54,669 nucleotides of DNA from Octopus bimaculoides (GCF_001194135.2 NC_069009.1:10374265-10428933), one strand, 5' to 3'; shown: positions 858-54,147, numbered from the stretch's first letter. Translations and numbers: made by a program. Notes: generated by a model from the sequence alone, not told the origin.

Positions 858-929
858 ATACTTGAGTCATAATAATATCAAGGAAATCCAATCAGACACC
901 TTCCAAAATCTGTCCAGTTTAACAGATCT
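858..929 (+). CDS. LRR exon 1 (class D): [23 protein letters not shown](L)
   Basis: ttccag|72 nt|gtaagt. Confidence 0.88.
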
Positions 930-3297
930 GTAAGTTGAACCAGTTTTCTTTTTTAGTATTTCATTGACGATGTTCTTCTAAATCCGTAATATCTTGCCAT
1001 CCTTGATTGTAAGCACCCTCAGCCGTCTTACCACAGATGTGTTTTATAGTTTGTGAGTCTGCGTCTGCTAGTGTGTGTCCATTTATTTGATATGTGATAT
1101 ACGAGAGGTTCATAGATCAGGGAAAAGAAATGGTGCTTGCATTCTTATGTCTGTGTGTATGTTTAAAATCTGTCTTTGAACAAAATATGTGTTGCTCGTA
1201 AATATGTGTGAGGGCCTGTTATTTAGGCTTCGTATAGAGAGTGCCTGATAATGAACAGGAAAAATTAGTGCAAACAAGTTTATGCGCATATATCATATGT
1301 TTGTCTCTCTGTAGGATTGTGTGCCGGCGAATCTATCAAAATGTATGTGAAATTCGGTCCGTGTATCATACGGTGTTTACGTCAAGATCACTACTGATTG
1401 CCAACCTTCTTCTTCTTCTTCTTCTTCTTCTTCTTCTTCTTCTTCTTCTTCTTCTTCTTCTTCTTCTTCTTCTTCTATTTGTATTTGTTTTATTCATGGA
1501 AGACTCCTTCTTCTGTAAATATTCTATTTTTCCTTCTTTCCGTTTGCTTTGTTCTTTCTCTATTCTTTCTTGTTCTTCTTCATCACAACTGTCTGCTGTT
1601 ACTTCTTTTTCTATGTCTTAAATATTTGCTCTTCTTCAATATCATATTCTTCTTCATCACCATATTCGCCATCATCATAGTCATGTTAATCCATATCAAC
1701 ATCAAGATAATCAGCCTTAACAATACCACCCCCAGCATCAGCATGAGAGCATATTCCTCATCAAAACTACCATATAATCTCCACTGCCTCATCATCATAT
1801 TCATCACTTCCTCTATCACAAAATACCCTAATACCTACACTACTACCATCATTATCGTATCTTCCTCTTCCACCTCCGACTCCTCTTCCCCATCACCGCT
1901 TTCATCATCATCACCTTCAATATCATAATTGTCACCATTATCTACATGGAATTAATCATCATCACGTTCATCTAATTGTTTCGCAAACATCCGTTACAAA
2001 TATGGCTTATACATTTTCTTATTAACTCAATTTTATGTTCCAGATACTTGAGTCATAATAATATCAAGGAAATCCAATCAGACACCTTCCAAAATCTATC
2101 CAGTTTAACAGATCTGTAAGTTGAACCAGTTTTCTTTTTTAGTATTTCATTGACGATGTTCTTCTAAATCCGTAATATCTTGCCATCCTTGATTGTAAGC
2201 ACCCTCAGCCGTCTTACCACAGACGTGTTTTATAGTTTGTGAGTCTGCGTCTGCTAGTGTGTGTCCATTTATTTGATATGTGATATACGAGAGGTTCATA
2301 GATCAGGGAAAATAAATGGTGCTTGCATTCTTATGTCTGTGTGTATGTTTAAANNNNNNNNNNNNNNNNNNNNNNNNNNNNNNNNNNNNNNNNNNNNNNN
2401 NNNNNNNNNNNNNNNNNNNNNNNNNNNNNNNNNNNNNNNNNNNNNNNNNNNNNNNNNNNNNNNNNNNNNNNNNNNNNNNNNNNNNNNNNNNNNNNNNNNN
2501 NNNNNNNNNNNNNNNNNNNNNNNNNNNNNNNNNNNNNNNNNNNNNNNNNNNNNNNNNNNNNNNNNNNNNNNNNNNNNNNNNNNNNNNNNNNNNNNNNNNN
2601 NNNNNNNNNNNNNNNNNNNNNNNNNNNNNNNNNNNNNNNNNNNNNNNNNNNNNNNNNNNNNNNNNNNNNNNNNNNNNNNNNNNNNNNNNNNNNNNNNNNN
2701 NNNNNNNNNNNNNNNNNNNNNNNNNNNNNNNNGTTACAGATATTTGCAAAATAATAATATCGAAAAAATTGAAGTAAGGGCTTTCCATGACCTGCCCAGT
2801 TTAAAATTTCTGTAAGTTGGATAAGTCTTTTCTCATAAAATTTCATTGACAATATATTAATAAATATTCAAAACCTCATTAATATTCGCACCATATCCTT
2901 GTTCCTCCTTACATTCCCAATGTGTTTTGATAGAAATCTATGATTGTGAGCGTCTGTAAATATGTGTCTGTGAGTGTGTGAATCTGAATATGTGTTGGCA
3001 TGTATAATATTTTCTGTTCTAGCTGCCCTGCTAAATCTTCTTATACACTCGAACGTGTCCTCCTTTACAACTACGGATATTGTAGGGAAACCATCTGAGG
3101 CAAGGATGTGCATATCTCTATGTACGCGGAAATCTACCACTTTAGGATTTAATAAAAATTATAATGGGTCTTGGGTATTTTGGGGTCACCTTGTATGTTT
3201 ATGAATGTAAATATGAGTGAGAACCCTTTCTGGAGATGAGAAGTATGTAAGTATGTGACAATTAAGTAAATGAATTAGTTGAAACGTATATATATGC

Positions 3298-3344
<47 letters not shown>

Positions 3345-3447
3345 AATAATAAATGGAGCAAAACGCATATAATCAATAAGTTCCTTTTATATATATATGA
3401 ATGTATGTAAGTATGTTTCTGCGTATAATATATATGTATATAAGTTG

Positions 3448-3494
<47 letters not shown>

Positions 3495-3649
3495 TGTATA
3501 TATATGTTTGTGTGTGTATCTGTCTATCGGTATATCTGTATGTGTATGTATGAGTGCATCTAAGTGTAGCGAACTACATGAGTAATTCGGTCTGTATATC
3601 ATGTTCGGTGTCTGCATCAGAACTGATTGCCATCATAGACTTTAGTTAC

Positions 3650-3680
<31 letters not shown>

Positions 3681-6600
3681 CTTCTTCTTCTTCTTCTTCT
3701 TCTTCTTCTTCTTCTTCTTTTGTCTTTTCCTATTTTTCTTCTGCTCTTAATTTTCACTTTATTTTTCCCATCCGCTTCCCATCCCCTTCGTCATCCGCCG
3801 CCTCCTCTTCTTCCATCTTCTTTCTTTTCTTCTTTTCACCGCTTCTTTTTTCTTTTTTCTTTTTTCTTCTTTTTCTGCTTTTGATTTTCACTTTCCCTTT
3901 TTCATCCTCTTTCTATCCTCTTCTTCTTCTTCTTCTTCTCCCCCTCCTTCCACTTCTACTTGTTTCATTTCTTCTTTTCCTTTTCTCTTTTTTTCTTCTG
4001 TCTTTGATTTTCACTTTATTTTTCCTATCCGCTTCCCATCCTCTTCGTCATCCGCCGCCTCCTCTTCTTCAATCTTCCTTCTTTTCTTCTTTTCCTTTTC
4101 TCTTTTTTCCTTTTCTCTTTTTTCCTTCTGTCGTTGATTTTCACTTTCCTTTTCTCATGACTTTTTTATGTCTCATGACTTTTACATTTTCTCATTTCCC
4201 TATCATTCTCGTTGTTCTGTATTTGTCTAAACTGTATGTATGGAAAATACATCCTCATCTGCCGAAAACATCGTTGCTGTCCTCTTCACCGTCATCTCAT
4301 TTTTGTTGTTATCTTTCTCAAACATGGCCTACGTCAAGTTCATCATAACCCTCAACATCATTCATTACCACACCATACTGCTATCGGATGCAGAATCTTC
4401 GAAACATCATCATCACCAACATTAACATCCCGAACAACAGAATCATAGACATGCTAATCCCCCACATTATCTAAATAGTCAACTTTAACATCATCAGCAT
4501 CCTAACTTCTTCGTCAACGTCACTACACACCATATACCTTTCTTTACAGTATCCACTTCATATTCATCACAACCACCGCCACAACGTCCACCATCAACTC
4601 TACCACCACCATTATCCTTCTATTCTACCTTCTGCTTACCACCATCATCATAACTATTATTATCGTCATGGACGTCATTATCAGCGCCATGAACTTTATG
4701 GAAGAAATCATCATGGTAATCTAGACCTACTTCCCAATCGCTTCCGTCATCAAATTGTTTAGCCCAAATTCTATTACAAATATTTTCTATACAATTCCTT
4801 CGTAATTTAATTTTATGTTCCAGATCTTTGAGTTCTAATGATATCACAGAAATCAAAGCAGACACCTTCCAAAATCTGTCCAGTTTAACAAACCTGTAAG
4901 TTGAATCTGTTTTACTTTTTAGTATTTCAATGTTGATACATTTCTAAATCTCTAATATCTTTCCATCCTTCGTTTTAAGCTCTCTCACCCATCTTTCCAA
5001 AGATGTTTTATATTGTCTGTGAATCTGTGTGCGTGAGTGAGTGCCCATTTCTGAGTTATGGGATATATGAGGGCGCGATAGATCAGAGGAGTCATTCAGT
5101 GCATACATACGTGTGTCTCGTTTTATATGTTAATACTGTCTCTGTCCAAAATCTGTGTTTCTATTTCTCAATGCGTGTGAATGTGGTTGAGGAGCCGTTC
5201 CTCAAATTAGGAAAATAAGACAAGTAAAGGGAAAAATTAGTGCAAACGTTTTAATGTACACGCACACACACACACACATATACATGTGAAAAGGTATTAA
5301 TCTTCTCTCTTCGCTCCTTTGCACCACATGGGCTGAACTTTCCTCCCCTTGCCCCTCTCCACCTCCCACCCACCTTTTCTCTCTTGCTCCGACTCCTACT
5401 TCTCTTCACTCATACCCTCTTTATCTTCTCTCTTGTCTCTTTTCTCTCCTACCCACCTTCTCCTTCCCCTTTCATCGTCAACCCTCCCTCGTAAGCCAAC
5501 CCCACCCAACCTCAACCCCNNNNNNNNNNNNNNNNNNNNNNNNNNNNNNNNNNNNNNNNNNNNNNNNNNNNNNNNNNNNNNNNNNNNNNNNNNNNNNNNN
5601 NNNNNNNNNNNNNNNNNNNNNNNNNNNNNNNNNNNNNNNNNNNNNNNNNNNNNNNNNNNNNNNNNNNNNNNNNNNNNNNNNNNNNNNNNNNNNNNNNNNN
5701 NNNNNNNNNNNNNNNNNNNNNNNNNNNNNNNNNNNNNNNNNNNNNNNNNNNNNNNNNNNNNNNNNNNNNNNNNNNNNNNNNNNNNNNNNNNNNNNNNNNN
5801 NNNNNNNNNNNNNNNNNNNNNNNNNNNNNNNNNNNNNNNNNNNNNNNNNNNNNNNNNNNNNNNNNNNNNNNNNNNNNNNNNNNNNNNNNNNNNNNNNNNN
5901 NNNNNNNNNNNNNNNNNNNNNNNNNNNNNNNNNNNNNNNNNNNNNNNNNNNNNNNNNNNNNNNNNNNNNNNNNNNNNNNNNNNNNNNNNNNNNNNNNNNN
6001 NNNNNNNNNNNNNNNNNNNNNNNNNNNNNNNNNNNNNNNNNNNNNNNNNNNNNNNNNNNNNNNNNNNNNNNNNNNNNNNNNNNNNNNNNNNNNNNNNNNN
6101 NNNNNNNNNNNNNNNNNNNNNNNNNNNNNNNNNNNNNNNNNNNNNNNNNNNNNNNNNNNNNNNNNNNNNNNNNNNNNNNNNNNNNNNNNNNNNNNNNNNN
6201 NNNNNNNNNNNNNNNNNNNNNNNNNNNNNNNNNNNNNNNNNNNNNNNNNNNNNNNNNNNNNNNNNNNNNNNNNNNNNNNNNNNNNNNNNNNNNNNNNNNN
6301 NNNNNNNNNNNNNNNNNNNNNNNNNNNNNNNNNNNNNNNNNNNNNNNNNNNNNNNNNNNNNNNNNNNNNNNNNNNNNNNNNNNNNNNNNNNNNNNNNNNN
6401 NNNNNNNNNNNNNNNNNNNNNNNNNNNNNNNNNNNNNNNNCTTCTTCTTCTTCTTCTTCTTCTTCTTCTTCTTCTTCTTCTTCTTCTTCTTCTTCTTCTT
6501 CTTCTTCTTCTTCTTCTTCTTCTTCTTCTTCTTCAGCTTGCCCTTCTCATTCTTCTACATCTTCGTCTTCTTCGTTTTACTGTTCTTCCTCTCCATCTTA

Positions 6601-7913
6601 TGCGTCTGCATCGTGTTCTTCGTCTACTTCTTTTACGTTTCCTTATTCGTCTTCGTCTACTTCCTCTCCTTTGTCGTCTTCTTCATCATCATTATAATCA
6701 TCAATATCAACAGTATAATCAGTGTCATTAACTTTATATTATTAATCATAATCGCGATCTACTACCCACCCCTCATCATCTAATTGTTTCGCCAAAATTC
6801 TGTCAAAAATATGTTTTATATAATTCCTTCTTAACATAATTTTATGTTCCAGAGATTTACGTTCTAATAATATGAAGGAAATCAAAGCAGACACGTTCCG
6901 AAATCTGCCCAGTTTAACAAATCTGTAAGTTTAATCATTCTTTCTTAAACTATTTCGTTGACAATATATTTCTGAATCTGTACTATTTTCTCATCCTTCA
7001 CTGTAAGCGCCCTCATCTTTCCAAAGATAAGTTTTATTGTTTGCGAATATATGTGTGTGAGTGTGAGCTCATTTCTTAGTTATGCGATATATGAGAGCGT
7101 AATAGTTCAGGAGAACCATTTAGTGTATGCTTGTGTATGCTTGTGTATGCTTGTGTATGCTTGTGTATGCCTCTTCAATATTGTCAACTTCATAAATATT
7201 TGCATCATCTACCGCAACGTCTGTATTATCTTCATCAATCTATTCATCATCATGTTTTTATTTCTCTTATAACAGGTATTCGTTTAGCCATAATGTTTTA
7301 ATGTTATACAACACTTCTATGAATTTCGCCTCTGAAAATATATTTTATGTTACAGATATTTGCAAAATAATAATATCGAAAAAATTGAAGTAAGGGCTTT
7401 CCATGACCTGCCCAGTTTAAAATTTCTGTAAGTTGGATAAGTCTTTTCTCATAAAATTTCATTGACAATATATTAATAAATATTCAAAACCTCATTAATA
7501 TTCCCATCATATCCTTGTTCCTCCTTACATTCCCAATGTGTTTTGATAGAAATCTTTGATTGTGAGCGTCTGTAAATATGTGTCTGTGAGTGTGTGAATC
7601 TGAATATGTGTTGGCATGTATAATATTTTCTGTTCTAGCTGCCCTGCTAAATCTTCTTATACACTCGAACGTGTCCTCCTTTACAACTGCGGATATTGTA
7701 GGGAAACCATCTGAGGCATGAATGTGCATATCTCTATGTACGCGGAAATCTATCTCTTTAGGATTTAATAAGAATTATAATGGGTCCTGGGTTTTTTTGG
7801 GTCACCTTGTATGTTTATGAATGTAAATATGAATGAGAAGCCTTTCTGGAGATGAGAAGTATGTAAGTATGTGACAATTAAGTAAATAAATTAGTTGAAA
7901 CGTATATATATGC

Positions 7914-7946
<33 letters not shown>

Positions 7947-8802
7947 TGGATATATGTATTTGTCTGCTTATGCGAGTATATAACAATCTATCTGTAATTC
8001 AGTCTGTCTATCATGAACTCCTCGTCTGCATCCTCATCACCATCGTCCTTCACATTTTCATTCCCTACTCAATCATAAACACATCGAAGTTCATTATGGT
8101 CCGCTTCTTCATCAATAACATTCGTTACCACAACATACTGCCACCTGATGCTGAATCTTAAAGTCTATCATCATCATCATCATGAACGTTACTATCCACG
8201 CTTACATGATTAACAATATCATATTCAGCATCATCATAGATGTGCTAATTCCCGTCGTTATCAGAATAATCAACATTAACAACATCACCCCATCGTCAGC
8301 ATCTTAACATCTTCGTCGTCATCACTACAAACCCTATACTCTTCTCCCCTGTTTCATCAACATATTCCTGGCAACGATAACGTACACTATCTAATCCACC
8401 ACCGCCAAAATCCTACTATTCGACCTCCCCTTCATCATCATTATAATGATCAACATCAACATCATCAGCTATGAACTTTATGGAATTAATCATAGTCACG
8501 ATCTACATTCCGCCCCAACCATCATCTAATTGTTTCGCCAATCTTATGTCACAACCACATTCTTCACAATTCCATCTTAACTTAATATCATGTTCCAGAA
8601 ACTTGACTCTTAATGATATGAAGGAAATCAAAGCAGACGTCTTCCGAAATCTTCCCAAATTAACAAAGCTGTAAGTTAATTCATTCTTTCTTATACTATT
8701 TCGTTGACGTTGTATTTGTAAATTTGTACACCCTTCCCAACCTTCATTTGAAATTCCCTCACTTGTGTTTCCAAAGATGTGTTTTATTGTTTCCGAATAT
8801 GC

Positions 8803-8893
<91 letters not shown>

Positions 8894-10127
8894 GGAGAGA
8901 GTGAAAATGAGAGAGTGTGTCCATTTCTTAGTTATGTGATCTATGAGAGCGTTATAGTTCAGACGAACCATCTAGTGTATGCTTCTGTATGTCTCTGTGT
9001 ATGTGTAAAGTGTGGCTCTGTCCAAAGTGTATGATTTTGTATATTAATATGTATGAATGTAAGGGAGAATCTGTTCCTCAGATAATGGATATATGAAAGT
9101 GTGACAATTGAGGACACAAATTTCTGTGATGATTACATCTCCATCATCACTGATTACCAGCGTAGACTTTACTTATACTTGTTGTTGCTGTTGTAGGTCT
9201 TTGTCTTTTACTATTGTTTTTCTTCTTCTTCTTCTTCTTCTTCTTCATTGTCTTTTTCGATTTCTTTCTATTCTTATTCTTCCTCTTCTGATCCTTCTTT
9301 TTCTTCCCACATTTGTATTTTGAATATTCGATTCCTCACTTCTACTCATTTTACTTCTCTTCAGCGTTTGATGTTGCTGTTTCTCTTCTTGATTTTTTAC
9401 TGCTGCACCTCTTCAACTCACCCTCTTCTTCTCATCTTTTTATTAACCTACTTGTTTCAATTATTCTCCAAGCTTCTTTTTTTTATTCTTTATGCTGTCG
9501 TAATTTTCACATACATTTTCACCAATGCTTTATGTCTTCAAATCTTCAAAATTTCTGTCTTCATATTAATCATCACTATTATCAATATTGTCAACCTGAC
9601 AAATATTTGCACTATTTAGAGCAACGTCAGTATTATCTCCATCAATCTATTCATCATATTTTTTTTTCTTAGAGCAGGTATTCGTTTAGCCATAATATTT
9701 TATGTTATACAGCACTTCTATGAATTTCACCTTTGAAAATATATCTTATGTTACAGAGATTTGCAAAATAATAATATCGAAAACATTGGAGTAAGAGCTT
9801 TCCATGACCTGCCCAGTTTAAGCAGTCTGTAAGTTGACAATATACTAATAAATATTAATAATCTTCTCATTAATATTAGCCCCATTATCCTTGTCCCTCC
9901 CTACATTGTCAATGTGCTTTTATAGAGATGTGTGACTGCTTGTGAGAGTCTGTAAATATGTGTGTCTGTGAGTGTTTGAATCTGAAAATGTGTTGGCACG
10001 TATAATATTTTGTGCTCCACCCTTGATGCTAGATCTACTTACCCATTCGAACGTGTCTTCCTTTACAACTACGGATCTTCCTGTTACTACAACCACAGCA
10101 GCATCAATGATGATGACAACAACAACA

Positions 10128-13086: not shown

Positions 13087-13968
13087 TCTCGTCTATTTTT
13101 TCTTTATCTTCCTCTTCTCATTCTTCTCTTTCTTCCTCTCGCTCTTCTCTTCATCATCATCATCATCATCATCATTACCATCCTTTACACAACAGTCCCG
13201 TGTTATTCTCCATATTCTTCTTCGTTTTCTGTTTCTTCTTTGTTTCATCCCACTTCTCGCATTTTTATTCTACATATTCGACTCCTCATTTCTACTCCTC
13301 TTACTTCATTTCTGCATTTTGATGTTTCTCTTCTTTTTCATCTTCTACTCCAGTCCATCGTCACATCTCCCTCTTTCTTCTCTTCATCTTATACTCCTCA
13401 TGACTTTAATTTTTCTCCGTGCTCTTTTTCTTTTTAATTATTACGTTGTCAAAATTTTCACATACATTCTCCAACACTATTTTACATTTTCAATCATTCA
13501 TGGTCTCTTTTTTCATATTAATCATCACTATTATTAATATTATCAATGTCACAAATATTTGCACCATCTACAGCAACGTCACTATTATCGTCATCAACCT
13601 ATTCATCATCAAAGTCTTTTACTTCCAGCAGGTACTCGTTTAGCCATAATATTTTATGTTATACAAAAAGTTTATGAATTTCACCTATGAAAATATATTT
13701 TATGTTACAGATATTTGCAAAATAACAATATTGAAAAAATTGACGTAAGAGCTTTGCATAATCTGCCCAGTTTAAGTTCTCTGTAAGTTGGATATGTCTT
13801 GTTCATAAAATTTCATTTACAATATACTACTAAATATTCCCAATATTCTAATTCATATTCGCCACATCTCCTTGTCTCTCTCTACATTCTCAATGTCATA
13901 TTAAGAATTCCCAGAGACATGCTAAACCCATCATTAACAGAATAATCAGCATTAACAACATCACTCCT

Positions 13969-29230: not shown

Positions 29231-29269
<39 letters not shown>

Positions 29270-34400: not shown

Positions 34401-34798
34401 TGGGGTCTGTTTTTTTTGGTGGGGGGGGGGAGGGTATATGTGTCCCATCAACATATTCCACACTACCATCATCATTGGTGCTATGAACATTATAGAATTA
34501 ATCTTAATCGCGATCTATATTCCACGCCAACCATCATCTAATTGTTTAGATATATTTCTGTCATAGATATGTTCTATACAGTTCCTTCTTAACTCAATAC
34601 TATCTTTCAGATATTTAACCTTTAATAATATGACGGAAATCAAAGCAGGCGCCTTCCGAAATCTGACCAGTTTAACACATCTGTAAGTTAAATCATTCTT
34701 CCTTATACTACTTCGTTGATGAAAATGTGTTAGCATGCATGACATTTCCCATTTCACCCAACACTGCTAGTTCTTATCCGTTGCAGCGAGTCTTCCTT

Positions 34799-42900: not shown

Positions 42901-45475
42901 CAGTAGATTTCAAAAACCAATAAGCCTCCGTCACCTGTCTCAGAGTATGTTGGATATGGCCTCTGTATACATTTCTTGTTGGCATTCTCTTTTCTGGATG
43001 AGCTCTTATCATTCATCCAAGTTCTGTGTGGGCTGTGCATTTTATCTGTCAACTGTTGGACATCTGTTTTGTTATCGTTGAACCAGTCTTGAATCTCTAC
43101 AGATGCAAAGTGGGTTGCATCACGCAGAGCCTTCCGAGATGGTGCGATGTCATCATTGATATGAAGAGTGCTGAATGCAGTGTTCTACTTAATAAAGAGC
43201 TCAATCTGTTTTTCAAAAGTTTTCAAAGGCAGTACATTAATGTGCTTAGGAAATGATGACTTTTGTAGTCTTGTGTGTTTCAGATGGAACGTAGCAGGTG
43301 TTTTGAATGAACGCTAATTGTTAAGGTACCTAATGTCTCGTTTCTTAGAGATAACATAGTCTATGAGATGCCAATCCTTAGATCTTAGTATGCGTCCAGG
43401 TCGTCTTAGAATAATTTCGCTGTTCAAAAATTCTATTTGTGATGCTTAGACTGAATTCCCTGCAGACGGAGAGCACATGAAGACCGCTGGAATTCATTAA
43501 CCTACATCATAACCAGCCTCCTATGCCTGATAGTCAGTACCAAAAAGAGCGTTATGTCGCCATAAGGACGAGTTTATCCCTATGGTGATAACTGGAGACA
43601 GCACCATGGCGTTGGTTATAAAGTTCATCCTTTTCCTTCTCAGTGCTGACCATGGCTGGGGCATAGCACGAGTGTTGTGATCAAGTTCCAACATTAGTGT
43701 CATGATGCGATCAGAAATACCTTTTGGGGAGGGGCTCCTTTGCCGCCCCTCCACTTGTTGTGGAAGGCGGTGCTGTGTCTAATTAGACCTGCTTTGTTAC
43801 CACTGGTGGACACGGACAGCACAACTACTCACAAGTTCTGTGCTGGAACACCCATCACCGAATGGCCGGCCGCCAGTTGTGGAGAGATCCAGCAAGAGAC
43901 TTCCGGTAATATTCTTTACCTGTCTCTATCACTTTCACTCCCTGACCAGTGGACATTTGGAATTTTTTTCAAGTTGAAGCAATGCCATATTGAATGAATA
44001 AATGTAAGTTGTCAGAAAACCACACAGATGATTTGATTTGAGTGTTGAAGGCCTGTAAGGTGTTTCCCTTCTTCAATATCATTTTCATTTTTTCTTCTAG
44101 AGCTTCAACATTTCTTCTTCTTCCCCGGCTCCTTTTCTTGTTGTTGTTGTTGTTGTTGGTCTTCTTCTTCTTCTTCTTCTTCTTCTTCTTCTTCTTCTTC
44201 TTCTTCTTCTTCTTCTTCTTCTTCTTCTCCACTTTCCTGCCCCTACTTCTCCTCATTATCACCAGCATCGTAACAACGTCAAGACGATAACCATATATCC
44301 TTCCCTTCTCTTTCAACATCTTACTCATTACAACCACCATTACAAGTTCCTCTACCAGCTCTACTACCACCATTATACTCCACCATTTCCACTTCCTCCT
44401 CCTCCTCCTCCTCATCACCATCATCATGAACAGCAGCAGTAGCCTTATAATAATCATCATCATCATGAAACTAACCATCAACTTGTTCTACTTTACATCA
44501 CTTCCACATGTAATATTTTAGCTAAAATTCTATCACAAATAAGTTCTGTACAATTTCCATCTTATCTTCCAGATCTTTGAGTTCTAATGGTATCAAGGAA
44601 ATCAAACCAGACACCTTCCGAAATCAGTTCCGTTTAACATATCTGTAAGTTGAATTAGTGATTTTTTAGTATGTCATTGACGATATGTTTCTAAATACGT
44701 AATGTCTTGCAATACTTCATTTTAAGCACCCTCACCCGTCTTACCAAAGATGTGTTTTCGTGTTTATAAATCTGTGAGTGTGGGCCCATTTCTTAGATAT
44801 TGTACATACGATAGCGTGTGTATGTCTCTGTCAATGTTTACAACCAGTGTCTCTGGTTTGGTTGCGAACGTCTGTGAATATGAGTGAGGGCATATTTACG
44901 AAATTTCGAATTTATGAGTGTGTAGCAATTGAGAGAAAAACGTTAGTGGAAACATGTTTATGGATCTATGTATGTCTCTGTGCATGTTTGGATGTGTGCA
45001 TGCGAGTTTATCAAAATGTATGTCTAATTCGACGTGTATATCATGTAAGGTGTTTACGATTCCATCATCGACTCTTCTTCTTCTTCTTCTTCTTCTTCTT
45101 CTTCTTCTTCTTCTTCTTCTTCTTCTTCTTCTTCTTCTTCTTCGTTTCCTCTCTCCGCCCCTCCTCCTCCTCCTCCTCCTCATCATCATCATCATAGCAT
45201 TTTCGTCATCAAGACTACAACCATATATTCTTCTCCTCTGCCTCATCATCTTATTTATCACTATCACCATCACAACGGCATCCACCAGCCTAACACTATC
45301 AGTATACTCTACTACTTCCAATTCAATATCCTCCTCCTCCTTCTCATCCTCCTTCNNNNNNNNNNNNNNNNNNNNNNNCTTCTTCTTCTTCTTCTTCTTC
45401 TTCTTCTTCTTCTTCTTCTTCTTCTTCTTCTTCTTCTTCTTCGTTTCCTCTCTCCGCCCCTCCTCCTCCTCCTCC

Positions 45476-45516: not shown

Positions 45517-47023
45517 GTCAACATCATCGTCATCACCATCATCTTCACGAAACTAATCATCATCGTGTTCTGCTTTCCATCCTTTTATTCATCTAATTAT
45601 TTAGCCAAAATTACGTCACAAATATCGACAAAATTCAGGTAGGGTCCTTCGATGACCTGCGCATTTTAGCATATCATTAAGTGAGATACGTCGCGATAAT
45701 ATTTCATAGACGATATATTATTACATGCTTAAAAAGTTTCACATTTTTTTTTCGCTACGCGTCCTTCTCTCTGTTTGCATCCTCACTCTTTTCCGATCGA
45801 AATGTGTGACTATCAGTGATTGTCTGTAAATACGTGTCTGTGAGTATGTGTCAATATGAATCTGTATTGGCATGTAAGACATTTTGTGTAGACTCTCCCT
45901 TCTAATTGCATATTCAAGAGTACGTTATTAATATTAGTATTTATACACCTTCCATCATCTTTCAATTCTCTTGCTCTTCTTCTTCTTCTTCTTCTTCTTC
46001 TTCTTCTTCTTCTTCTTCTTCTTCTTCTTCTTCTTCTTCTTCTTCTTCTTCTTCTTCTTCTTCTTCTTCCTCCTCCTCCTACTCCCCCTCATCATCATCA
46101 TCATCGTCATCATCATTTTCTCCTTGGTATTCTTTACCTTTCCATTTTCCACATCTGCTTTCTTTTCTTCCTCTCCTTCCTCTATTTTATATCCACTCTG
46201 TTGTAACGTAGTTTGTAACGTACAATAAATAAGACGACTAGAAAACAGTTAAAATCAATGTAAGGAAACAACAAATGATTTTACGAACAAACATTCAATA
46301 TTCCTTGTGAACTAACCAACCGACACCTTCCGACTTCTCTGCAAACTAACACGAACCTCACTCGACTTCGAACTCTTAACCTTGAACTCACACAGATCGT
46401 TACTATTTATACTTTACTCAGACCAGTCTATCTCTCGTAAGGAGGTATCGTTAATCTCATTAGAAAAACCTCTTGAAATTTCGACTACTATGAGAAATTG
46501 GAATTTCTTTTCTTTTTTCTTTTTTCTTTCCAGCTTCTCACCTTCTTTAATTTTAGTTGTATCTTAATTGCTGCTTCACATTTAAGACATTATCATTCGT
46601 TGCACACATTACTTTATCATCTTCTTCCGAATTTCAAACTTTTTTCAATCCGTCGTCTCTAATTTCCATAGTAACACGTTTTTGCTGAATTCTTTTCCTT
46701 CTTTTCTTCATCAAAAATCGGTTCCTTACAAATTCTGCTTAACCTAATTTTATTTGACAGGAATTTGAGTTTTAATGATATCAAAGAAATGAAAGGAGAA
46801 ATATTCCAAGATCTTCCCAGTTTAAAAAGTCTGTAAGTTAACTCAGTCTTGCTTATAGTATTACAATGACGATATATTTTTTAATATGTGTCTTCCCATA
46901 CTTCATTTTTACCACACTCACCTACCTTTACCTCTACAATCAATCTCTGTCGCAAGTGTGCTATTGAGAGTGTGACAAATGAGTGTAAATATGAAATGCA
47001 ACCATACGTATATATATATGTAT

Positions 47024-48118: not shown

Positions 48119-48200
<82 letters not shown>

Positions 48201-51155
48201 GTACTATTACTATTTTGACCTATGGTGCAATTCACTTGGTGGAATTTTCTGTGGCGGTAATTTACTACAGTGGAATTTACCGGTCACCACAGGATCATAA
48301 CATCATCGTCGTCAACCGCTTCATCCTCATAAACATCACTACTACAACTACTACCACCACCAACAAGAAGAATAACAACACCAGCATCACCATCAGCAGC
48401 ACCGCCATCATTATACCCATCATCATCGCAATCTGCTCGGCAGCTCTTCTATCATCTAATTGTTTAGACATGACATCTAATATTCTGTTACAAATCTGTT
48501 CCATACAAGTCCTTAACATCATTTTATTTTACAGAGAATTGGGTGGTAATGGTATGAAGATCCAAGCAGAAATGTTCCAAAATCTTTCCATCTTAACACG
48601 TCTGTAAGTTGATTAATTCACGTTTATAGTATTTCATTGAAGATATATTTCCAAATATGTAATGATACCCATATTTCATTTTAAACTCTCTCACCCATTC
48701 TTCCATATACTGTCACAGACTCTCTCTCTCTCTCTCTCTCTCTCTGCCTGTCTGTCCCTCTCTCNNNNNNNNNNNNNNNNNNNNNNNNNNNNNNNNNNNN
48801 NNNNNNNNNNNNNNNNNNNNNNNNNNNNNNNNNNNNNNNNNNNNNNNNNNNNNNNNNNNNNNNNNNNNNNNNNNNNNNNNNNNNNNNNNNNNNNNNNNNN
48901 NNNNNNNNNNNNNNNNNNNNNNNNNNNNNNNNNNNNNNNNNNNNNNNNNNNNNNNNNNNNNNNNNNNNNNNNNNNNNNNNNNNNNNNNNNNNNNNNNNNN
49001 NNNNNNNNNNNNNNNNNNNNNNNNNNNNNNNNNNNNNNNNNNNNNNNNNNNNNNNNNNNNNNNNNNNNNNNNNNNNNNNNNNNNNNNNNNNNNNNNNNNN
49101 NNNNNNNNNNNNNNNNNNNNNNNNNNNNNNNNNNNNNNNNNNNNNNNNNNNNNNNNNNNNNNNNNNNNNNNNNNNNNNNNNNNNNNNNNNNNNNNNNNNN
49201 NNNNNNNNNNNNNNNNNNNNNNNNNNNNNNNNNNNNNNNNNNNNNNNNNNNNNNNNNNNNNNNNNNNNNNNNNNNNNNNNNNNNNNNNNNNNNNNNNNNN
49301 NNNNNNNNNNNNNNNNNNNNNNNNNNNNNNNNNNNNNNNNNNNNNNNNNNNNNNNNNNNNNNNNNNNNNNNNNNNNNNNNNNNNNNNNNNNNNNNNNNAT
49401 ATATATATATATATATATATATAAAACCAATGACACACAACCACACACACACAGACATACATACACAGACAGACACACACACTCACACACACACATTCAC
49501 ACACACACATACACGCACGCACGCACACACACACATGTACATATATATATATGTTTGTGTGTGTGTGTGCGTGTGCGTGTATGTGTATGTGTGTTATCTT
49601 TGTATATTTTGTATATGAATAATGCGAGTGTATCAACATGCGTGCAATATTCAGTCTCTATATCATGTACATGTTTTCTCTCCAAACCAATACTGTTTAC
49701 CCTCGCAGTTGTATATTTAGCACTATATTATTCTGATTTTAATTTTTATACAAATTGATTTTTGTTGTTGTTGTTGTTGTTGTTCTTCCTCTCCTCCTCC
49801 TCCTCCTCCTCCTCCAATACTCTTCCTCCTCCTCCTCCAATACTCTTCCTCCTCCTCCTCCAATCCTCTTCCTTCTCCTCCTTCTCCTCCTTCTCCTCGT
49901 CCTCCTCCTCCACATTCTTCTTCTCCATATTTCGCGTGCCTTTCATTTTCTCTTATGATTTCTTCATAATTTTTTGTTTCTCTATCTGCTGCTATATTTC
50001 TATGCATCTAATACCTGTACTATTTGCATCAGAGCCACCGCCACCATGATCATTATCGACTTCTTCGTTTTCGTCATCGTCGACGTAATCATCTTCTTCA
50101 TCATTTCTATATTTATCTGTCATCAGCATCGTCAACATCAACATCCGACTCTTCATCATCAACATCATTCATTACCATCAGACACCACGATCAGATGCAC
50201 AATCTTCAGCATCATCACCATCATCGCTACAGAAACATCACCACAAACATCAACATCCTCAATATCATATTTTTGATTTCCATAGATATGGAATCCTAAA
50301 CCTTGACAGGATAATCGCACTGAACAACATCACATTCGATCATCCGGATCATAACATTATCAACACTGACATCATATTTTCATGTCTTCCAGTTTATCAT
50401 CATATACTTCACTACCAGTGGAGGCGCAATGGCCCAGTGGTAGGGCAGCGGACTAGCGGTCATAGGATTGCGGTTTCGATTCCTAGACCGGCCGTTATGA
50501 GTGTTTATTGAGCGAAAACACCTAAAGCTCCACGAGGCTGTACTCTTCCACCACAACTTTCTCTCACTCTTTCTTCCTGTTTCTGTTGTGCCTGTAATTC
50601 AAAAGGGTCAGCCTTGTCACACTCTGTGTCGCGCTAAATATCCCCGAGAACTACGTTAAGGGTACACGTGTCTGTGGAGTGCTCAGCCACTTGCACGTTA
50701 ATTTCACGAGCAGGTTGTTCCGTTGATCGGATCAACTGGAACCCTCGACGTCGTCAGCGACGGAGTGCCGACAACAACAACAACAACAACTTCACTACCA
50801 CAGCCACCACCATAACCAGCAACACAACCACCACCACCACCTTTATCCCCATTATCGTTATCTAATACCTCATCATCATAATCTACTCTGCATCCATAAT
50901 CGAATTGTTTAGACATGACATTCAATATTCTTTCACAAATCTGATCCATACAATTTCTTAACTAAATCTTTATTTACAGCGATTTAAGTGGTAATGATAT
51001 GAAGGAAATCAAACCAGAAATATTCAAATATCTTTCCAGCTTAACAGATCTGTAAGTTGAATAATTCATGTTTATTGTATTTCATTAAAGATATATTTCT
51101 AAATATGTGATGATACCCATATTTCAATTAAAAAACCTTCACCCCTCTTTCCCTA

Positions 51156-51209
<54 letters not shown>

Positions 51210-51604: not shown

Positions 51605-51644
<40 letters not shown>

Positions 51645-53642
51645 TATATGTATATGAACATAAAATAACACTCAATTTTATGTCACAGATATCTGAACGA
51701 CAATGACATAAAGTATATTCAACGTGATATCTTTGGAAACCTTCCGAATTTAGAAAAATTGTGAGTTGAGTCGCTTTTATTCGTATTATTTAATTAACCG
51801 TATATCCAGATTGTCAATATTTTCTCCAACTTTGCTTTTCTTTCTCTCTCGTTGTCCCAATCAAGCATTCTTATTCGCTCTGTCTCTCTCCATAGTTTTC
51901 TCTAAGTATGAGTGTATGTACGTTTTGTGAAAGTGAAAGTATATGGTTGTATAATCTTTTTTTCATTATCTCCTTATGTATATGTAATCATGCTCTTGTT
52001 ATCGAATTAATCTTAAGATTTTTCTTCTATATTTCATGTTCTTTATTTTCTAAACGTTCGTCTCACTAATATTCAAATATTCATTATTCGACAACATTTC
52101 ATCATCTTTTTCTCTTTGTTTTCTTTTTTGTTCTAGTTTTCTAAGTTTATCTGTTAATCTTCTTATGTTTTTCACATGTTTTTTTTTGTGTGTATGGATG
52201 TACATATACTGGATGTATCAGTAAAGTTTCCAAATTTTAGATTCGAATTCGGAAGTTTGTATATCAAGAATGCTTAAAGATAACTTAATGGGATTATGAG
52301 AGGATTTTCGAATGCAAATTGACCCTTCTTTGAGCAAGACGAAATGTTGATTACTCTCCAACCCCACAAAAATAATCATGAATCAAATGCTCATTGGCGG
52401 AAACGATATTTTCAGAAATAATTTACCATAGCTTAGAGTTGGGAGCTAATAAACTATTGGAATAAAGTTCCAATGAAAGCGTAAAGTCATATTTCAAAGG
52501 GCTACAGAGAGTTCTATCCACAATTTTGTGTGTTAGGCATCAAGAGTTATTCTACTTTTGGCAATGGCTTCCTCAATCCTCTTTCTGACTGTACCACAAG
52601 CTTTCTGAATGACTTCATCAATGTTCTCCTCACACCTTCTACGAATGGAGTTTTGGGGGAATTGAAGTTAAGTGTGGGGCTTCTCACAACCTCTTTCCGA
52701 CCAGTTCATCCCAGATGCTGACGTCTAAAGGGCTTGAATCAGGTGATGAATGAGACCAAGTATCCTTATCTTAAAACCTGCTCGCACACATATCCCTGTG
52801 AAACTTTTGACCCAATGCTCTTGTGGGACAAGGAATATCATCTTTCCATCAGAGGCCATGCAGATTTAAATCATCACCATGCCACGGTTTTTGTACCTGA
52901 AATTGACGTTTTTTTGGCTCTCTTGTGAGAAGCTGAAGCCAGGACGCTGCTGTTGCATCTGTTTGTGTGCATATCATGGGTGAACCTCTTGTCATGTGTG
53001 TAAAAGATCACTCGAGGGTTGTGTTCTACTTTGCTCAAGATGATCTTCTCCAAACTTCTAACCCTTTGTTGTGGAGTAACAAGATGCCTCACTGGTCTCG
53101 TGTCCAATTTCATTATCTAATCTTCTGTCACCAGTCTCTGAACGACTGTCATTGCTAAAACTCCTCTTTTATATGCCATGCGCCTTGAGGATTGAGTTGG
53201 ATCTCTTTCGATTGATATCTTCAGCGCCAGCTGGAAATGGTGATCCTTCTTGCGATTCTGACTTCCGGATTCAGCTTTCCTCTCCATTATTCCCTCTTTC
53301 TCAAACTTATTCACAATTCCCTTGATGCTTTTTCAATGGAGTTTGAAGTTCTTCAAAATGTTAATCAGTTTCCAGTCCGTTGTCTAAAATTCCTTTCACA
53401 TCATATTTACCCTGCTTTCTATAATTTTTCTTTTCTATCAACAATCTCATCCTATTCACCGTCATTGTCATCAACAGTATCATCATCACAATTATTTACA
53501 CCATCTTCAACACCGTTAATTTTATCGTCAACATATTTTTATTATCGTCAACAGAAACAGCACTAATTTCATCTCGTCATCAGTATCATCTTAAGTATCC
53601 TCCTCCTCCTCCTCCTCCTCCTCCTCCTCCTCCTCCTCCTCC

Positions 53643-53675
<33 letters not shown>

Positions 53676-54147
53676 CCATCACCATCATCATCGTCGTCGT
53701 CGTCATCATCATCAGCATAACTATCTTCATCAGCATCGTTATCACGAGCTTCATCACCATCAACAGCAACAACATTATCTTCGTCATCACTACCACCATC
53801 CCACTGTCCTCTGCCCCTTCCTCATATTCCTCCATACCAACAGGATTACCTCATTCATCCTCCTCCTTTCTACCATCAATATTATCATCATTTTCATTAT
53901 CAACTACTTTCGTTCTCCATCAAGTAATACTTTATATATTTATCACAAGGCACTTCCGTACATTTTCTAATCCTCTAGCATTTTATTTTATTTTATAGAC
54001 ATTTCGGTGATAGTAATAATTTGCAAAAAAGCTCCTTTTTATGTTTATCTCATCAGGCAAAATTTTATATTACAGATATTTGAATAAAAATAGTATCGAC
54101 AAAATTCAAGTAGGGACCTTTGATGATCTGCCCAGATTAAGATATCT
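858..54147 (+). CDS. Partial multi-exon gene: tandem array of 34 single-LRR exons (815 aa if all spliced); extracellular LRR protein, termini outside window
   Basis: 34 AG..GT-bounded exons read by hand, all phase 2-2. Junction codons are CTN/TTR Leu, with one ATA Ile, and no stops. Recurrent N-glycosylation sequons (NLS/NLT/NIS/NMT). One 72-nt exon per LRR is known from LGR/RXFP-type receptors, but family cannot be assigned without the termini. Confidence 0.85.
2044..2115 (+). CDS. LRR exon 2 (class D): same peptide as exon 1
   Basis: ttccag|72 nt|gtaagt; one synonymous change vs exon 1 (ctg/cta). Confidence 0.82.
2740..2811 (+). CDS. LRR exon 3 (class B): [23 protein letters not shown](L)
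   Basis: ttacag|72 nt|gtaagt, immediately after an N gap. Confidence 0.85.
4824..4895 (+). CDS. LRR exon 4 (class D): [23 protein letters not shown](L)
   Basis: ttccag|72 nt|gtaagt. Confidence 0.9.
5293..5519 (+). mobile_element. Tail fragment of the same Penelope-like family as 41209-41760
   Basis: Shares ttctctcttcgct.ctttgc...catgggct and ctctcttgctccga..catacttctcttcactc with 41525-41730. Confidence 0.6.
6853..6924 (+). CDS. LRR exon 5 (class A): [23 protein letters not shown](L)
   Basis: ttccag|72 nt|gtaagt. Confidence 0.9.
7356..7427 (+). CDS. LRR exon 6 (class B): identical to exon 3
   Basis: ttacag|72 nt|gtaagt. Confidence 0.88.
8599..8670 (+). CDS. LRR exon 7 (class A): [23 protein letters not shown](L)
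   Basis: ttccag|72 nt|gtaagt. Confidence 0.9.
9757..9828 (+). CDS. LRR exon 8 (class B): [23 protein letters not shown](L)
   Basis: ttacag|72 nt|gtaagt. Confidence 0.9.
10963..11034 (+). CDS. LRR exon 9 (class C): [23 protein letters not shown](L)
   Basis: ttccag|72 nt|gtaagtagaat. Confidence 0.9.
11127..11198 (+). CDS. LRR exon 10 (class A): [23 protein letters not shown](L)
   Basis: ttccag|72 nt|gtaagt; preceded by a 92-nt intron. Confidence 0.88.
11641..11794. repeat. (CTT)n microsatellite, representative of dozens of (CTT)n, (CAT)n, (CTA)n, (TA)n and (CA)n tracts
   Basis: Directly visible; these tracts generate most ORF-track hits. Confidence 0.95.
13711..13782 (+). CDS. LRR exon 11 (class B): [23 protein letters not shown](L)
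   Basis: ttacag|72 nt|gtaagt. Confidence 0.9.
14412..14483 (+). CDS. LRR exon 12 (class C): [23 protein letters not shown](L)
   Basis: ttccag|72 nt|gtaagtagaat. Confidence 0.9.
14754..15227 (+). mobile_element. Internally deleted Tc1/mariner (DD41D/rosa-like) relic, copy after exon 12
   Basis: Termini cagggtgacc...ggtcaccttg followed by TA; internal sequence matches the other four copies. Confidence 0.75.
15726..17050 (+). mobile_element. Penelope-like retroelement fragment (RT + GIY-YIG), degenerate
   Basis: [14 protein letters not shown] (RT motif A), [10 protein letters not shown] (motif B), RYLDD (motif C), LPFLD, then [18 protein letters not shown] (GIY-YIG-like); frameshifts and stops. 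17450-18290 may be its 3' region. Confidence 0.85.
18319..18390 (+). CDS. LRR exon 13 (class A): [23 protein letters not shown](L)
   Basis: ttccag|72 nt|gtaagt. Confidence 0.9.
19175..19246 (+). CDS. LRR exon 14 (class B): [23 protein letters not shown](L)
   Basis: ttacag|72 nt|gtaagt. Confidence 0.9.
20217..20288 (+). CDS. LRR exon 15 (class C): [23 protein letters not shown](L)
   Basis: ttccag|72 nt|gtaagtagaat. Confidence 0.9.
20506..21040 (+). mobile_element. DD41D/rosa-like mariner relic, copy after exon 15
   Basis: Translates [38 protein letters not shown]...DFY, with 41 residues between the DGA Asp and the last Asp; contains a stop. Confidence 0.8.
21698..21769 (+). CDS. LRR exon 16 (class A): [23 protein letters not shown](L)
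   Basis: ttccag|72 nt|gtaagt. Confidence 0.9.
22831..22902 (+). CDS. LRR exon 17 (class B): [23 protein letters not shown](L)
   Basis: ttacag|72 nt|gtaagt. Confidence 0.9.
23702..23773 (+). CDS. LRR exon 18 (class C): [23 protein letters not shown](L)
   Basis: ttacag|72 nt|gtaagtagaat. Confidence 0.9.
24036..24405 (+). mobile_element. DD41D/rosa-like relic, 3'-truncated, after exon 18
   Basis: Starts cagggtgacc; contains cagcaagatgaggccacc and gatgtctatctgtgggg (DxYLWG-like) segments. Confidence 0.75.
25315..25386 (+). CDS. LRR exon 19 (class A): [23 protein letters not shown](L)
   Basis: tttcag|72 nt|gtaagt. Confidence 0.9.
26797..26868 (+). CDS. LRR exon 20 (class B): [23 protein letters not shown](L)
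   Basis: ttatag|72 nt|gtaagt. Confidence 0.9.
28422..28493 (+). CDS. LRR exon 21 (class C): identical to exon 18
   Basis: ttacag|72 nt|gtaagtagaat. Confidence 0.9.
28759..29232 (+). mobile_element. DD41D/rosa-like relic, after exon 21
   Basis: ta-cagggtgacc start; ccgcattcaccagacttgaacacaccagatttttat = [12 protein letters not shown]; ends in (TA)n. Confidence 0.78.
29265..29999. repeat. Long inverted repeat, arms about 240 bp (29265-29509 and 29764-29999)
   Basis: e.g. gatcgtcagcgtagtctatcgatt vs aatcgacagactacgctgacgatc; only a few small indels or mismatches. Confidence 0.85.
29707..30045. mobile_element. MITE-like element with about 57-bp terminal inverted repeats (CAGTG...CACTG)
   Basis: 29707-29765 cagtggtctagcata...catacaaaaa is the near reverse complement of about 29990-30045; TSD uncheckable because of the adjacent gap. 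Confidence 0.55.
30770..30841 (+). CDS. LRR exon 22 (class A): [23 protein letters not shown](I)
   Basis: ttccag|72 nt|gtaagt; ends in AT, giving Ile when joined to exon 23. Confidence 0.9.
31951..32022 (+). CDS. LRR exon 23 (class B): [23 protein letters not shown](L)
   Basis: tcatag|72 nt|gtaagt; Asn-ladder position is Ser. Confidence 0.88.
33536..33607 (+). CDS. LRR exon 24 (class C): [23 protein letters not shown](L)
   Basis: ttccag|72 nt|gtaagtagaat. Confidence 0.9.
33872..34410 (+). mobile_element. DD41D/rosa-like relic, after exon 24
   Basis: tagggtgacc start; cagcaaaacggggccacc and gtaattgacaattttg segments shared with other copies. Confidence 0.75.
34611..34682 (+). CDS. LRR exon 25 (class A): [23 protein letters not shown](L)
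   Basis: tttcag|72 nt|gtaagt. Confidence 0.9.
36153..36224 (+). CDS. LRR exon 26 (D-like): [23 protein letters not shown](L)
   Basis: tttcag|72 nt|gtaagt. Confidence 0.9.
36418..36680 (+). mobile_element. tRNA-derived SINE, apparently a composite of two octopus-type SINE halves
   Basis: A-box-like ggctgtgtggtaag head; tail aaggcggtgctccagtatggccacagtc...ctgaaacaagtaaaa shared with 38477-38544. Confidence 0.7.
38477..38544 (+). mobile_element. 5'-truncated SINE with 10-bp target-site duplication
   Basis: Tail ggcggtgccccagcatggccgcag...gtaaaagag flanked by aacactacaa at 38467-38476 and 38545-38554. Confidence 0.75.
38857..38928 (+). CDS. LRR exon 27 (D-like): [23 protein letters not shown](L)
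   Basis: ttccag|72 nt|gtaagt. Confidence 0.9.
40429..40500 (+). CDS. LRR exon 28 (class E, B-related): [23 protein letters not shown](L)
   Basis: ttacag|72 nt|gtaagt. Confidence 0.9.
41209..41760 (+). mobile_element. Penelope-like element 3' end (GIY-YIG endonuclease + C/T-rich tail)
   Basis: [45 protein letters not shown] with a frameshift in (CT)n. Confidence 0.82.
41830..43900 (-). mobile_element. RTE-clade (BovB-like) LINE fragment, degenerate
   Basis: Minus-strand peptides [11 protein letters not shown] (endonuclease region), [39 protein letters not shown] (RT). Confidence 0.85.
44573..44644 (+). CDS. LRR exon 29 (D-like, paralog of 27): [23 protein letters not shown](L)
   Basis: ttccag|72 nt|gtaagt; a core Leu is replaced by Gln. 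Confidence 0.85.
45621..45676 (+). pseudogene. Dead class-E LRR pseudo-exon: [18 protein letters not shown]
   Basis: Aligns to the 3' part of exons 28/34. The acceptor and 5' part are missing, and the sequence is fused to a D-type upstream block. The donor position reads ttaagt instead of gtaagt. Confidence 0.8.
46761..46832 (+). CDS. LRR exon 30: [23 protein letters not shown](L)
   Basis: tgacag|72 nt|gtaagt. Confidence 0.88.
48535..48603 (+). CDS. LRR exon 31 (69 nt, 23-aa repeat): [22 protein letters not shown](L)
   Basis: ttacag|69 nt|gtaagt; one-codon in-frame deletion relative to paralog exon 32. Confidence 0.83.
50418..50788 (+). mobile_element. Full-length tRNA-derived SINE with (CAA)n tail and 12-bp TSD
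   Basis: A-box tggcccagtggtag and B-box ggtttcgattcc; TSD acttcactacca at 50406-50417 and 50789-50800. Confidence 0.85.
50980..51051 (+). CDS. LRR exon 32: [23 protein letters not shown](L)
   Basis: ttacag|72 nt|gtaagt. Confidence 0.9.
51689..51760 (+). CDS. LRR exon 33 (most divergent): [23 protein letters not shown](L)
   Basis: tcacag|72 nt|gtgagt; downstream intron unrelated to other units. Confidence 0.88.
52480..53420 (-). mobile_element. Degenerate Tc1/mariner transposase, DD37D/maT-like
   Basis: Minus-strand [22 protein letters not shown] (HTH-like), [11 protein letters not shown] (SDEK-like), [30 protein letters not shown]; subfamily is inference. Confidence 0.7.
54076..54147 (+). 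CDS. LRR exon 34 (class E): [23 protein letters not shown](L)
   Basis: ttacag|72 nt|gtaagt. Confidence 0.9.

Follow-up and report, generated by a model that had tools for sequence, protein, structure and literature searches.

A 54,669-nt stretch of the Octopus bimaculoides genome, which we refer to as the window, contains part of a real, unusually long array of exons that each encode a single leucine-rich repeat (LRR). The window holds 34 intact exons of this kind, all on the + strand; the array extends past the window on both sides, and at least 40 LRR exons run into a single exon encoding a C-terminal LRR cap (LRRCT). Sequence comparison places the gene in an octopod family of LRR-bearing adhesion G-protein-coupled receptors (GPCRs), matching the group 3 described by Ritschard et al. 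in 2019 (PMC6408891). With a confidence somewhat above even, we favour the reading that this is one large ectodomain gene of that family, whose array grew by block duplication and whose exons are probably used in variable subsets. Here, we describe the architecture of the array, the selection acting on it, the gene and family to which it belongs and the evidence that bears on its splicing.

Architecture of the exon array

The window matches the O. bimaculoides chromosome record CM046629.1 (GCA_001194135.2) at 100% identity, with window position 26411 corresponding to record position 10400675, and includes 4,083 N in 14 gaps. A first-pass annotation, made from the sequence alone, had rightly suspected a cephalopod. 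It had also claimed 34 intact phase 2-2 exons of one LRR each, a claim borne out by a splice-aware scan (AG, 69 or 72 nt and GT, open in phase 2 and carrying an LRR pattern) combined with an nhmmer profile: the scan returned 0 matches on the minus strand and 0–1 in 20 shuffles. All but one of the exons are 72 nt long, the exception being a 69-nt exon (48535–48603), and all 34 are in phase 2-2 with AG/GT splice sites. The donor is GTAAGT in 33 of 34 exons and GTGAGT in the other, and the acceptors consist of a polypyrimidine tract followed by AG. A representative exon (858–929) has the structure ttccag/ATACTTGAGTCATAATAATATC...ACAGATCT/gtaagt and reads as an LRR flanked by split leucine codons. 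The repeat unit of the window is a diverged, + strand one with the 72-nt exon at its core. When joined, the exons match Pfam LRR_8 with 918 bits (E = 2e-284), and the 24-residue LxxLxLxxNxIxxIxxxxFxxL repeats are of the typical extracellular type (Pfam LRR_8 / LRR_1), with scaffold residues present in 33–34 of the 34 exons.

The last two bases of an exon are CT (29), TT (4) or AT (1), and the first base is A (26), G (7) or C (1), so that every possible junction codon encodes Leu, Phe, Ile or Met, and the earlier statement that no forward join can create a stop holds. The junction codon specifies the hydrophobic position conserved in the LxL strand, and the symmetrical exons permit 2^34 in-frame subsets. 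The locus leaves no trace among six-frame open reading frames (ORFs), as had been noted; every listed ORF either is of low complexity or spans a gap. Were the intron after any exon retained, translation would add a single hydrophobic residue (Met after exon 22, Leu after the other 33 exons) and meet a stop at once, because the introns are all in phase 2 and the donors are GTAAGT or GTGAGT (xxG TAA or xxG TGA). Any exon could thus terminate a truncated, secreted LRR protein or trigger nonsense-mediated decay.

At the upstream edge of the window, positions 46–421 (+ strand) are 74% identical to the post-exon block that follows exon 1 (1041–1420). The array therefore continues upstream, as the first-pass annotation had proposed, with a further LRR exon just before the window. 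The same annotation had contrasted the length of the run with that of LGR/RXFP ectodomains, and the run is indeed long: 40 LRR exons lead to one LRRCT, compared with 3–17 LRRs in annotated relatives. A 35th copy in the window (about 45605–45676, + strand) was detected by the nhmmer profile in decayed form, with a TTAAGT donor and with the scaffold L and N lost; it is in no gene model.

Growth of the array by block duplication

The exons fall into three classes: A, with a ttacag acceptor; B1, with G as the first base and the donor gtaagtag; and B2. At the upstream end, exons 1 (858–929), 2 (2044–2115), 4 (4824–4895), 5 (6853–6924) and 7 (8599–8670) are of class B2, and exons 3 (2740–2811) and 6 (7356–7427), which are identical in sequence, are of class A. 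Exons 8–25 form six tandem A-B1-B2 blocks of roughly 4–5 kb each. The first block comprises exons 8 (9757–9828), 9 (10963–11034) and 10 (11127–11198), the last of these preceded by an intron of just 92 nt. It is followed by blocks made up of exons 11 (13711–13782), 12 (14412–14483) and 13 (18319–18390); exons 14 (19175–19246), 15 (20217–20288) and 16 (21698–21769); exons 17 (22831–22902), 18 (23702–23773) and 19 (25315–25386); and exons 20 (26797–26868), 21 (28422–28493) and 22 (30770–30841), exon 22 being the only one with an AT end. The sixth block consists of exons 23 (31951–32022), which has a TAG acceptor and an N-to-S change in the scaffold, 24 (33536–33607) and 25 (34611–34682). The exon classes recur with a period of three, from which we conclude that the array grew as a block of three exons was repeatedly duplicated in tandem. 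Exons 18 and 21 share every one of their 72 nt, with flanks below the 90% identity threshold of our self-comparison, which suggests short-tract gene conversion between blocks.

We also considered whether the array might be an assembly artefact. Each of the 14 N gaps falls in an intron, and 12 of them adjoin (CTT)n, (CA)n, (TA)n or (CT)n microsatellites, which are usual break points in short-read assemblies. Since every exon carries splice sites of its own, the gaps do not threaten the continuity of the frame; those of at least 100 N could still conceal additional exons. Self-comparison revealed two pairs of blocks with 97% identity. One pair (621–1167 and 1807–2353) lies within a single gap-free contig (1–2353), as do exons 1 and 2, which are 98.6% identical. 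The other pairs a 607-nt block (2733–3339) with 7349–7955; the former starts at the edge of an N gap (2354–2732) and contains exon 3, which begins 8 nt past that gap. From the gap positions and the block self-comparison, we reject an artefactual origin for the array, save possibly for exon 3, which is the most that assembly redundancy could account for. The intron that separates exon 21 from exon 22 contains a 245-nt inverted repeat with 95% identity (29265–29509 and 29764–29999), next to a 10-N gap (30046–30055); the repeat could be a foldback element, an element like the miniature inverted-repeat transposable elements, or an assembly fold-back.

Selection on the exons

Comparison of exons with the introns that flank them indicates that the copies have been kept intact. 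Within exon classes, substitutions amount to about 15% in exons and 17–23% in flanking introns, and indel columns to 0.7% and 8–15%, respectively, making indels roughly ten times rarer in exons. In simulations at the intron rates of substitution and indels, about 9% of copies stayed intact, whereas 34 of 35 are observed to be so (P ~4e-35). We conclude that the exons code for protein, or did so until very recently.

Selection is unevenly distributed along the repeat. The scaffold codons L2, N5, I7, I10, F15, L18 and L21 are nearly invariant across the 34 exons, with a ratio of non-synonymous to synonymous substitution rates (dN/dS) of 0.11–0.24, as against 0.7–1.0 at other codons. By these estimates, the LRR scaffold is under strong purifying selection and the surface residues drift almost freely. 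Together, the low scaffold dN/dS and the 34 of 35 intact copies uphold the earlier view of the exons as genuine one-LRR cassettes under selection. Positions 1, 3, 4 and 23, which are predicted to lie on the concave face, are the most variable (pN 0.29, compared with 0.17 and 0.03). Positive selection on the concave-face codons was tested for, and their dN/dS of 0.7 was not above 1 and not significant.

One probable gene divided between two models

NCBI divides the array between two gene models, which lie 183 nt apart in an intron with two N gaps. The upstream model (805 aa) has exon 26 (36153–36224) as its final exon and ends by reading through the exon 26 donor (CT/GTAA, Leu-stop) into a TAA at 36226–36228 (+ strand), without an untranslated region (UTR). 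The downstream model, XP_052833813.1 (784 aa, named 'toll-like receptor 5'), begins with a 16-nt ATG exon at 36411–36426 (+ strand; ATGTATTGGCTGTGTG/gtaagt), which has no UTR and is probably an ab initio completion. This exon is spliced to an alternative acceptor upstream of the normal exon 27 acceptor, and 78 nt of intron (38779–38856, + strand) are read as coding. The N terminus of the model thus consists of the 16-nt exon and translated intron sequence, and it carries no signal peptide. From there, the model joins exons 27 (38857–38928), 28 (40429–40500, A-like), 29 (44573–44644), 30 (46761–46832), 31 (48535–48603, the 69-nt exon, which encodes a 23-residue LRR), 32 (50980–51051), 33 (51689–51760, with the GTGAGT donor) and 34 (54076–54147, A-like), and then six more LRR exons beyond the window, in order, skipping only the decayed copy. 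Over exons 27–34, our joined exons are 98% identical to it.

Within the 40-exon run, we found no exon encoding a signal peptide or N-terminal LRR cap (LRRNT) and none encoding an LRRCT. Because the run lacks cap exons and both model ends look like ab initio completions without a UTR, we infer that the two NCBI models belong to a single transcription unit, probably split artificially into fragments by the public annotation.

After the LRRs, XP_052833813.1 continues with one LRRCT exon, cysteine-rich exons and two copies of a module consisting of an alpha/beta and an HRM-like part. Pfam sees only LRRs in this protein and gives no match to the tail; a TIR domain, which the first-pass annotation had proposed looking for, was not found at E <= 0.1. 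Lacking a TIR domain and having a tail of adhesion-GPCR family type, the protein is not a Toll-like receptor, and the name 'toll-like receptor 5' is wrong. In the AlphaFold model of XP_052833813.1, the LRRs have pLDDT values above 90 and the alpha/beta modules are confident, and the cysteine-rich and HRM-like parts are poor; the nearest solved folds are LGR4, LRIG1, LRRTM2 and TLRs. The label Ly6-like for the cysteine-rich part comes from one weak PDB sequence match, to LYPD1 (E = 0.016), and the HRM label derives from a sub-threshold match in a relative. The alpha/beta module, predicted to be beta-alpha-beta-beta-alpha-beta, may be read as 'SEA-like'.

The tandem doubling of the alpha/beta and HRM-like module was located in the downstream DNA record (L001) at 54381–62636 and 65491–72509. 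Relatives in O. vulgaris (CAJ1099358/59) have the same doubled module, which is therefore a trait of the family and not a mis-assembly. Intact LRR exons resembling exons 28–30 come after the second module, at L001 74086, 76535 and 78362, and L001 72342–82390 (equivalent to about 98750–108800 on the window scale) appears to be an additional, incomplete tandem copy of the gene.

An octopod family of LRR adhesion GPCRs

The family assignment rests on the joining of exons 27–34 to a family-specific tail in XP_052833813.1, whose tail exons we located in L001. In a word-indexed search, the non-LRR tail of this protein matched only Octopus proteins. The tail-only sequence of a paralogue (P0131), searched exhaustively against 1.84 billion representatives, matched 41 clusters only; of the ten that were looked up, eight are from Octopus, one is from Argonauta and one is a faint match in scallop. 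The tail (LRRCT, cysteine-rich and alpha/beta parts) is 37–63% identical to family members, which share the same type of LRR and are named 'adhesion GPCR G6-like', 'GPR126-like' or 'ADGRA3'. Relatives score above Pfam thresholds for GPS (42–54 bits) and 7tm_2 (41–143 bits), and one O. bimaculoides member of 1535 aa additionally has a Death domain. Full-length relatives comprise a signal peptide, LRRNT, LRRs, LRRCT, a Ly6-like cysteine-rich part, the alpha/beta and HRM-like parts, GAIN/GPS, a seven-transmembrane (7TM) domain and sometimes a Death domain. At paralogous loci on the same chromosome, a model of the ectodomain is followed by a model with GPS and 7tm_2.

Ritschard et al. described an octopus-specific group 3 of adhesion GPCRs, for which LRRs were reported in 5 of 22 sequences and a Death domain in one member; positive selection was also reported, as was expression in suckers, skin and the axial nerve cord (PMC6408891). 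Members such as O. bimaculoides XP_052821851.1 (1535 aa) share with the window gene the LRR type, the tail and the chromosome of the paralogues. They differ in having about 3–17 LRRs, compared with at least 40 LRR exons here, and in that GPS and 7tm_2 were found in members, whereas no GAIN or 7TM exon was found in the 10 kb searched after the last tail exon of this copy.

The first-pass annotation had framed the locus in terms of LGR/RXFP receptors. This frame does not fit: neither the model nor its tail relatives have LDLa or 7tm_1, and the relatives carry GPS and 7tm_2 instead. LGR5-like proteins match at the LRR level only (~35%), and we rejected an LGR/RXFP identity.

Cassette splicing in paralogues

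Annotated isoforms of paralogues in two other species indicate that skipping of single-LRR cassettes is a trait of the family. The O. sinensis paralogue on contig VCDQ01004985.1 (gap-free, 52.7 kb) has 11 detected 72-nt LRR exons and 13 RefSeq isoforms (XP_036355612-23) of 409, 385, 361 or 337 aa. The last three cassettes are constitutive in these isoforms, and the first five or six are used in differing subsets, with 0–3 variable cassettes per isoform and one pair of cassettes that is never combined. The locus also has two additional intact 72-nt LRR exons (L005 28668–28739 and 31667–31738) that none of the 13 isoforms uses. Other O. sinensis and O. vulgaris genes form similar length series (525/501/477, 489/465/441 and 531/507 aa), and the O. 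vulgaris isoforms (CAI9732351-56 / CAJ1099358-59) differ by exact 24-aa cassettes. Splice forms in the O. vulgaris annotation derive from Iso-Seq and RNA-seq through PASA (PMC10700109). By analogy with these paralogues, which provide strong though indirect evidence, cassette splicing of the window gene is plausible.

The paralogues of O. sinensis and O. vulgaris share with the window gene the 72-nt, phase-2, one-LRR exons with AG/GTAAGT sites, the alternating exon classes and the LRRCT and cysteine-rich tail; they differ in having 3–11 LRR exons with annotated skipping, the window gene having no annotated isoforms. Pyrimidine-rich (CTT)n introns are likewise common to the window gene and the O. 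sinensis locus, the only one checked for this feature. In the window, the + strand has 29 (CTT) runs of at least 8 units and no such (AAG)n run, and 18 of 33 introns carry one. The runs are often about 450–550 nt past an exon (for example, 558–632, 1406–1474, 11644–11793, 23373–23471, 27550–27660 and 37053–37154). The sense strand is 61% pyrimidine, with 1430 occurrences of TCTT and 120 of AAGA. The alternatively spliced O. sinensis paralogue has the same strand bias (26 runs versus 0), and the non-LRR part of the window gene has much less of it. In RNA, these runs form UCUU-rich tracts of the kind bound by PTB-type splicing repressors.

The earlier annotation had drawn analogies with Dscam and with the variable lymphocyte receptors (VLRs) of lampreys, neither of which finds support here as a mechanism. 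A search of the introns for docking or selector complementarity, a weak test because it needed matches of about 9 nt or more, revealed no hub, only dinucleotide repeats and one local pair of inverted repeats, and the 0–3 variable cassettes of the paralogue isoforms depart from a choice of exactly one. As for VLR-type assembly, all 34 cassettes lie on one strand, in register and with AG/GT sites.

A model for the locus and its alternatives

In the model that we favour, the window covers the central part of the region that encodes the LRRs in a single, very large O. bimaculoides ectodomain gene, where each 24-residue LRR has a 72-nt exon of its own. Each exon is cut inside the conserved leucine codon of the LxL strand, which is why all introns are in phase 2. 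Tandem duplication of the A-B1-B2 block has produced at least 40 exons running into the single LRRCT, and selection has retained splicing, frame and the scaffold residues (L, N, I, I, F, L, L) in each copy. The two NCBI models would form one transcription unit, and its mRNAs would carry varying subsets of cassettes through ordinary exon skipping, as annotated for the paralogues, so that the ectodomains would vary in both length and surface. Neither mutually exclusive choice nor somatic rearrangement would be involved. In a bolder version, which we consider improbable, the 40 or more LRR cassettes would be interchangeable and cells would vary the subset used, making the gene an LRR counterpart of Dscam or the clustered protocadherins that provides surface codes, or specificities of binding, for individual neurons, sucker receptor cells or haemocytes; the long sense-strand (CUU)n tracts of the introns might then act as regulatory handles.

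Several findings weigh against the favoured model. A transcript-derived protein containing exons 8–25 is absent from a collection of 5.8 billion proteins that includes ORFs from assemblies of sequencing runs, in which the best match to these exons is 42%. The public models join the exons they use in order and have a single annotated isoform. The donors are all near-consensus GTAAGT, as would be expected if the exons were constitutive; those of the exons that the O. sinensis paralogue skips, however, are no different. Isoform sets built from short reads can overstate combinations. Finally, the tail is followed at L001 74086, 76535 and 78362 by LRR exons and not by GAIN/7TM: a permissive tblastn search of the 10 kb after the last tail exon recovered no more of the GAIN linker than its initial 15 residues (L001 72465–72509), and the gene copy at this locus may be without a membrane part.

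These findings bear on three other accounts. The array could encode a constitutive giant solenoid, with all 40 or more LRR exons spliced in order into about 1,000 residues or more and no splice diversity, an account that we regard as possible but doubtful. It would explain why the public models join each covered intact exon in order and omit the decayed copy only, and why splice sites are uniformly strong and every exon shows scaffold selection. The 805-aa upstream model could fit all 26 upstream window exons plus more, and long LRR proteins do exist, with chaoptin- and artichoke-like proteins being the best non-octopus matches. Against this, annotated relatives have only 3–17 LRRs and the paralogues skip cassettes in their annotated isoforms; the model ends at the split look ab initio, so that the in-order joins may partly reflect the predictor. 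TLR ectodomains already close a ring with about 26 typical LRRs, and a solenoid of 40 or more would need to form a spiral, which is possible and unprecedented in the family. Alternatively, the array, or its upstream 26 exons, could be a young and partly non-functional duplicate, recently amplified within a tandem cluster of truncated copies of the ectodomain, that is little or not transcribed and is kept intact in appearance by gene conversion. The absence of exons 8–25 from the 5.8-billion-protein collection would fit, as would the identity of exons 18 and 21 between diverged flanks and the 97% blocks, which suggest conversion or recent duplication, the presence of LRR exons in place of GAIN/7TM after the tail domains, the one copy already decayed and the non-scaffold dN/dS near 1. 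Yet the copies are about 15% diverged and 34 of 35 still keep the frame, both splice sites and the seven scaffold residues, conversion alone would homogenise copies and not maintain diverged intact ones, and exon indels are some tenfold rarer than those of the adjoining introns. We judge this account unlikely.

A hypervariable receptor of the Dscam or VLR kind, in which cassette choice is regulated, cell-specific or driven by pathogens and supplies a very large repertoire for immune or self/non-self recognition, seems to us very unlikely. Its appeal lies in the 2^34 in-frame subsets that the symmetrical exons allow, in variability that is highest at the predicted concave positions 1, 3, 4 and 23, in the two paralogue cassettes that are never used together and in the reported positive selection and expression of the family in suckers, skin and axial nerve cord (PMC6408891). 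This is countered by the lack of a docking or selector hub in the introns searched, by paralogue isoforms with 0–3 variable cassettes in place of exactly one, by a concave-position dN/dS of 0.7, not above 1, and, with respect to somatic assembly, by the canonical splice sites and single strand order; nothing in our analysis points to an immune role.

Comparison with other LRR and exon-array systems

Receptors that combine an LRR ectodomain with a 7TM domain also include ADGRA2/ADGRA3 (GPR124/125), LGR4-6 and the glycoprotein-hormone receptors. The ADGRA receptors differ in having about 4 LRRs and an immunoglobulin domain, and the LGRs in being of the rhodopsin class (7tm_1), with at most about 17 LRRs and no tandem expansion of an exon block. 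The coding of roughly one LRR per exon is itself shared with LGR-type genes. In Slit genes, too, LRRs lie in 72-bp exons with the potential for alternative splicing, in which skipping keeps the frame. The LRRs of Slit, however, are divided among four short domains with caps, and the protein is a conserved guidance cue that is secreted; it does not represent an array expanded in one lineage. The arthropod proteins chaoptin and artichoke resemble the octopus gene in their very long runs of 24-residue LRRs (27–31% identity); they are GPI-anchored or bear FN3 domains and have no tail domains in common with it, so that the likeness is at the level of the repeat only.

Among systems that diversify a binding surface, Drosophila Dscam1 likewise has tandem arrays of duplicated exons in the same phase. 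In Dscam1, exactly one exon per cluster is chosen through docking/selector RNA pairing, whereas the octopus paralogues vary the number of cassettes. Lamprey VLRs also derive diversity from LRR modules, but are assembled somatically from cassettes without splice sites; the cassettes of the window are ordinary exons of the germline, all oriented alike. The family was already public, as were the gene models; the exon-array architecture and the cassette splicing had no description in the literature searched. We found no paper on these exon arrays or their cassette splicing, a search on the splicing of single-LRR exons gave nothing useful, and the description of group 3 (PMC6408891) includes neither one-LRR-per-exon arrays nor cassette splicing.

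Implications for octopus receptor evolution

For the public annotation, the analysis corrects the 'toll-like receptor 5' misnomer and identifies what is probably one gene behind two models. For octopus biology, the wider setting is that these animals have expanded a few families of surface receptors, such as protocadherins and certain GPCRs, which are thought to underlie their nervous system and chemotactile arms. The locus described here adds a second axis of expansion, within one gene: it has the longest run of LRR exons seen in its family, and its intact copies have been kept usable. If cassette skipping of the kind annotated for the paralogues operates here, the number of different ectodomains available from this one gene could be enormous.

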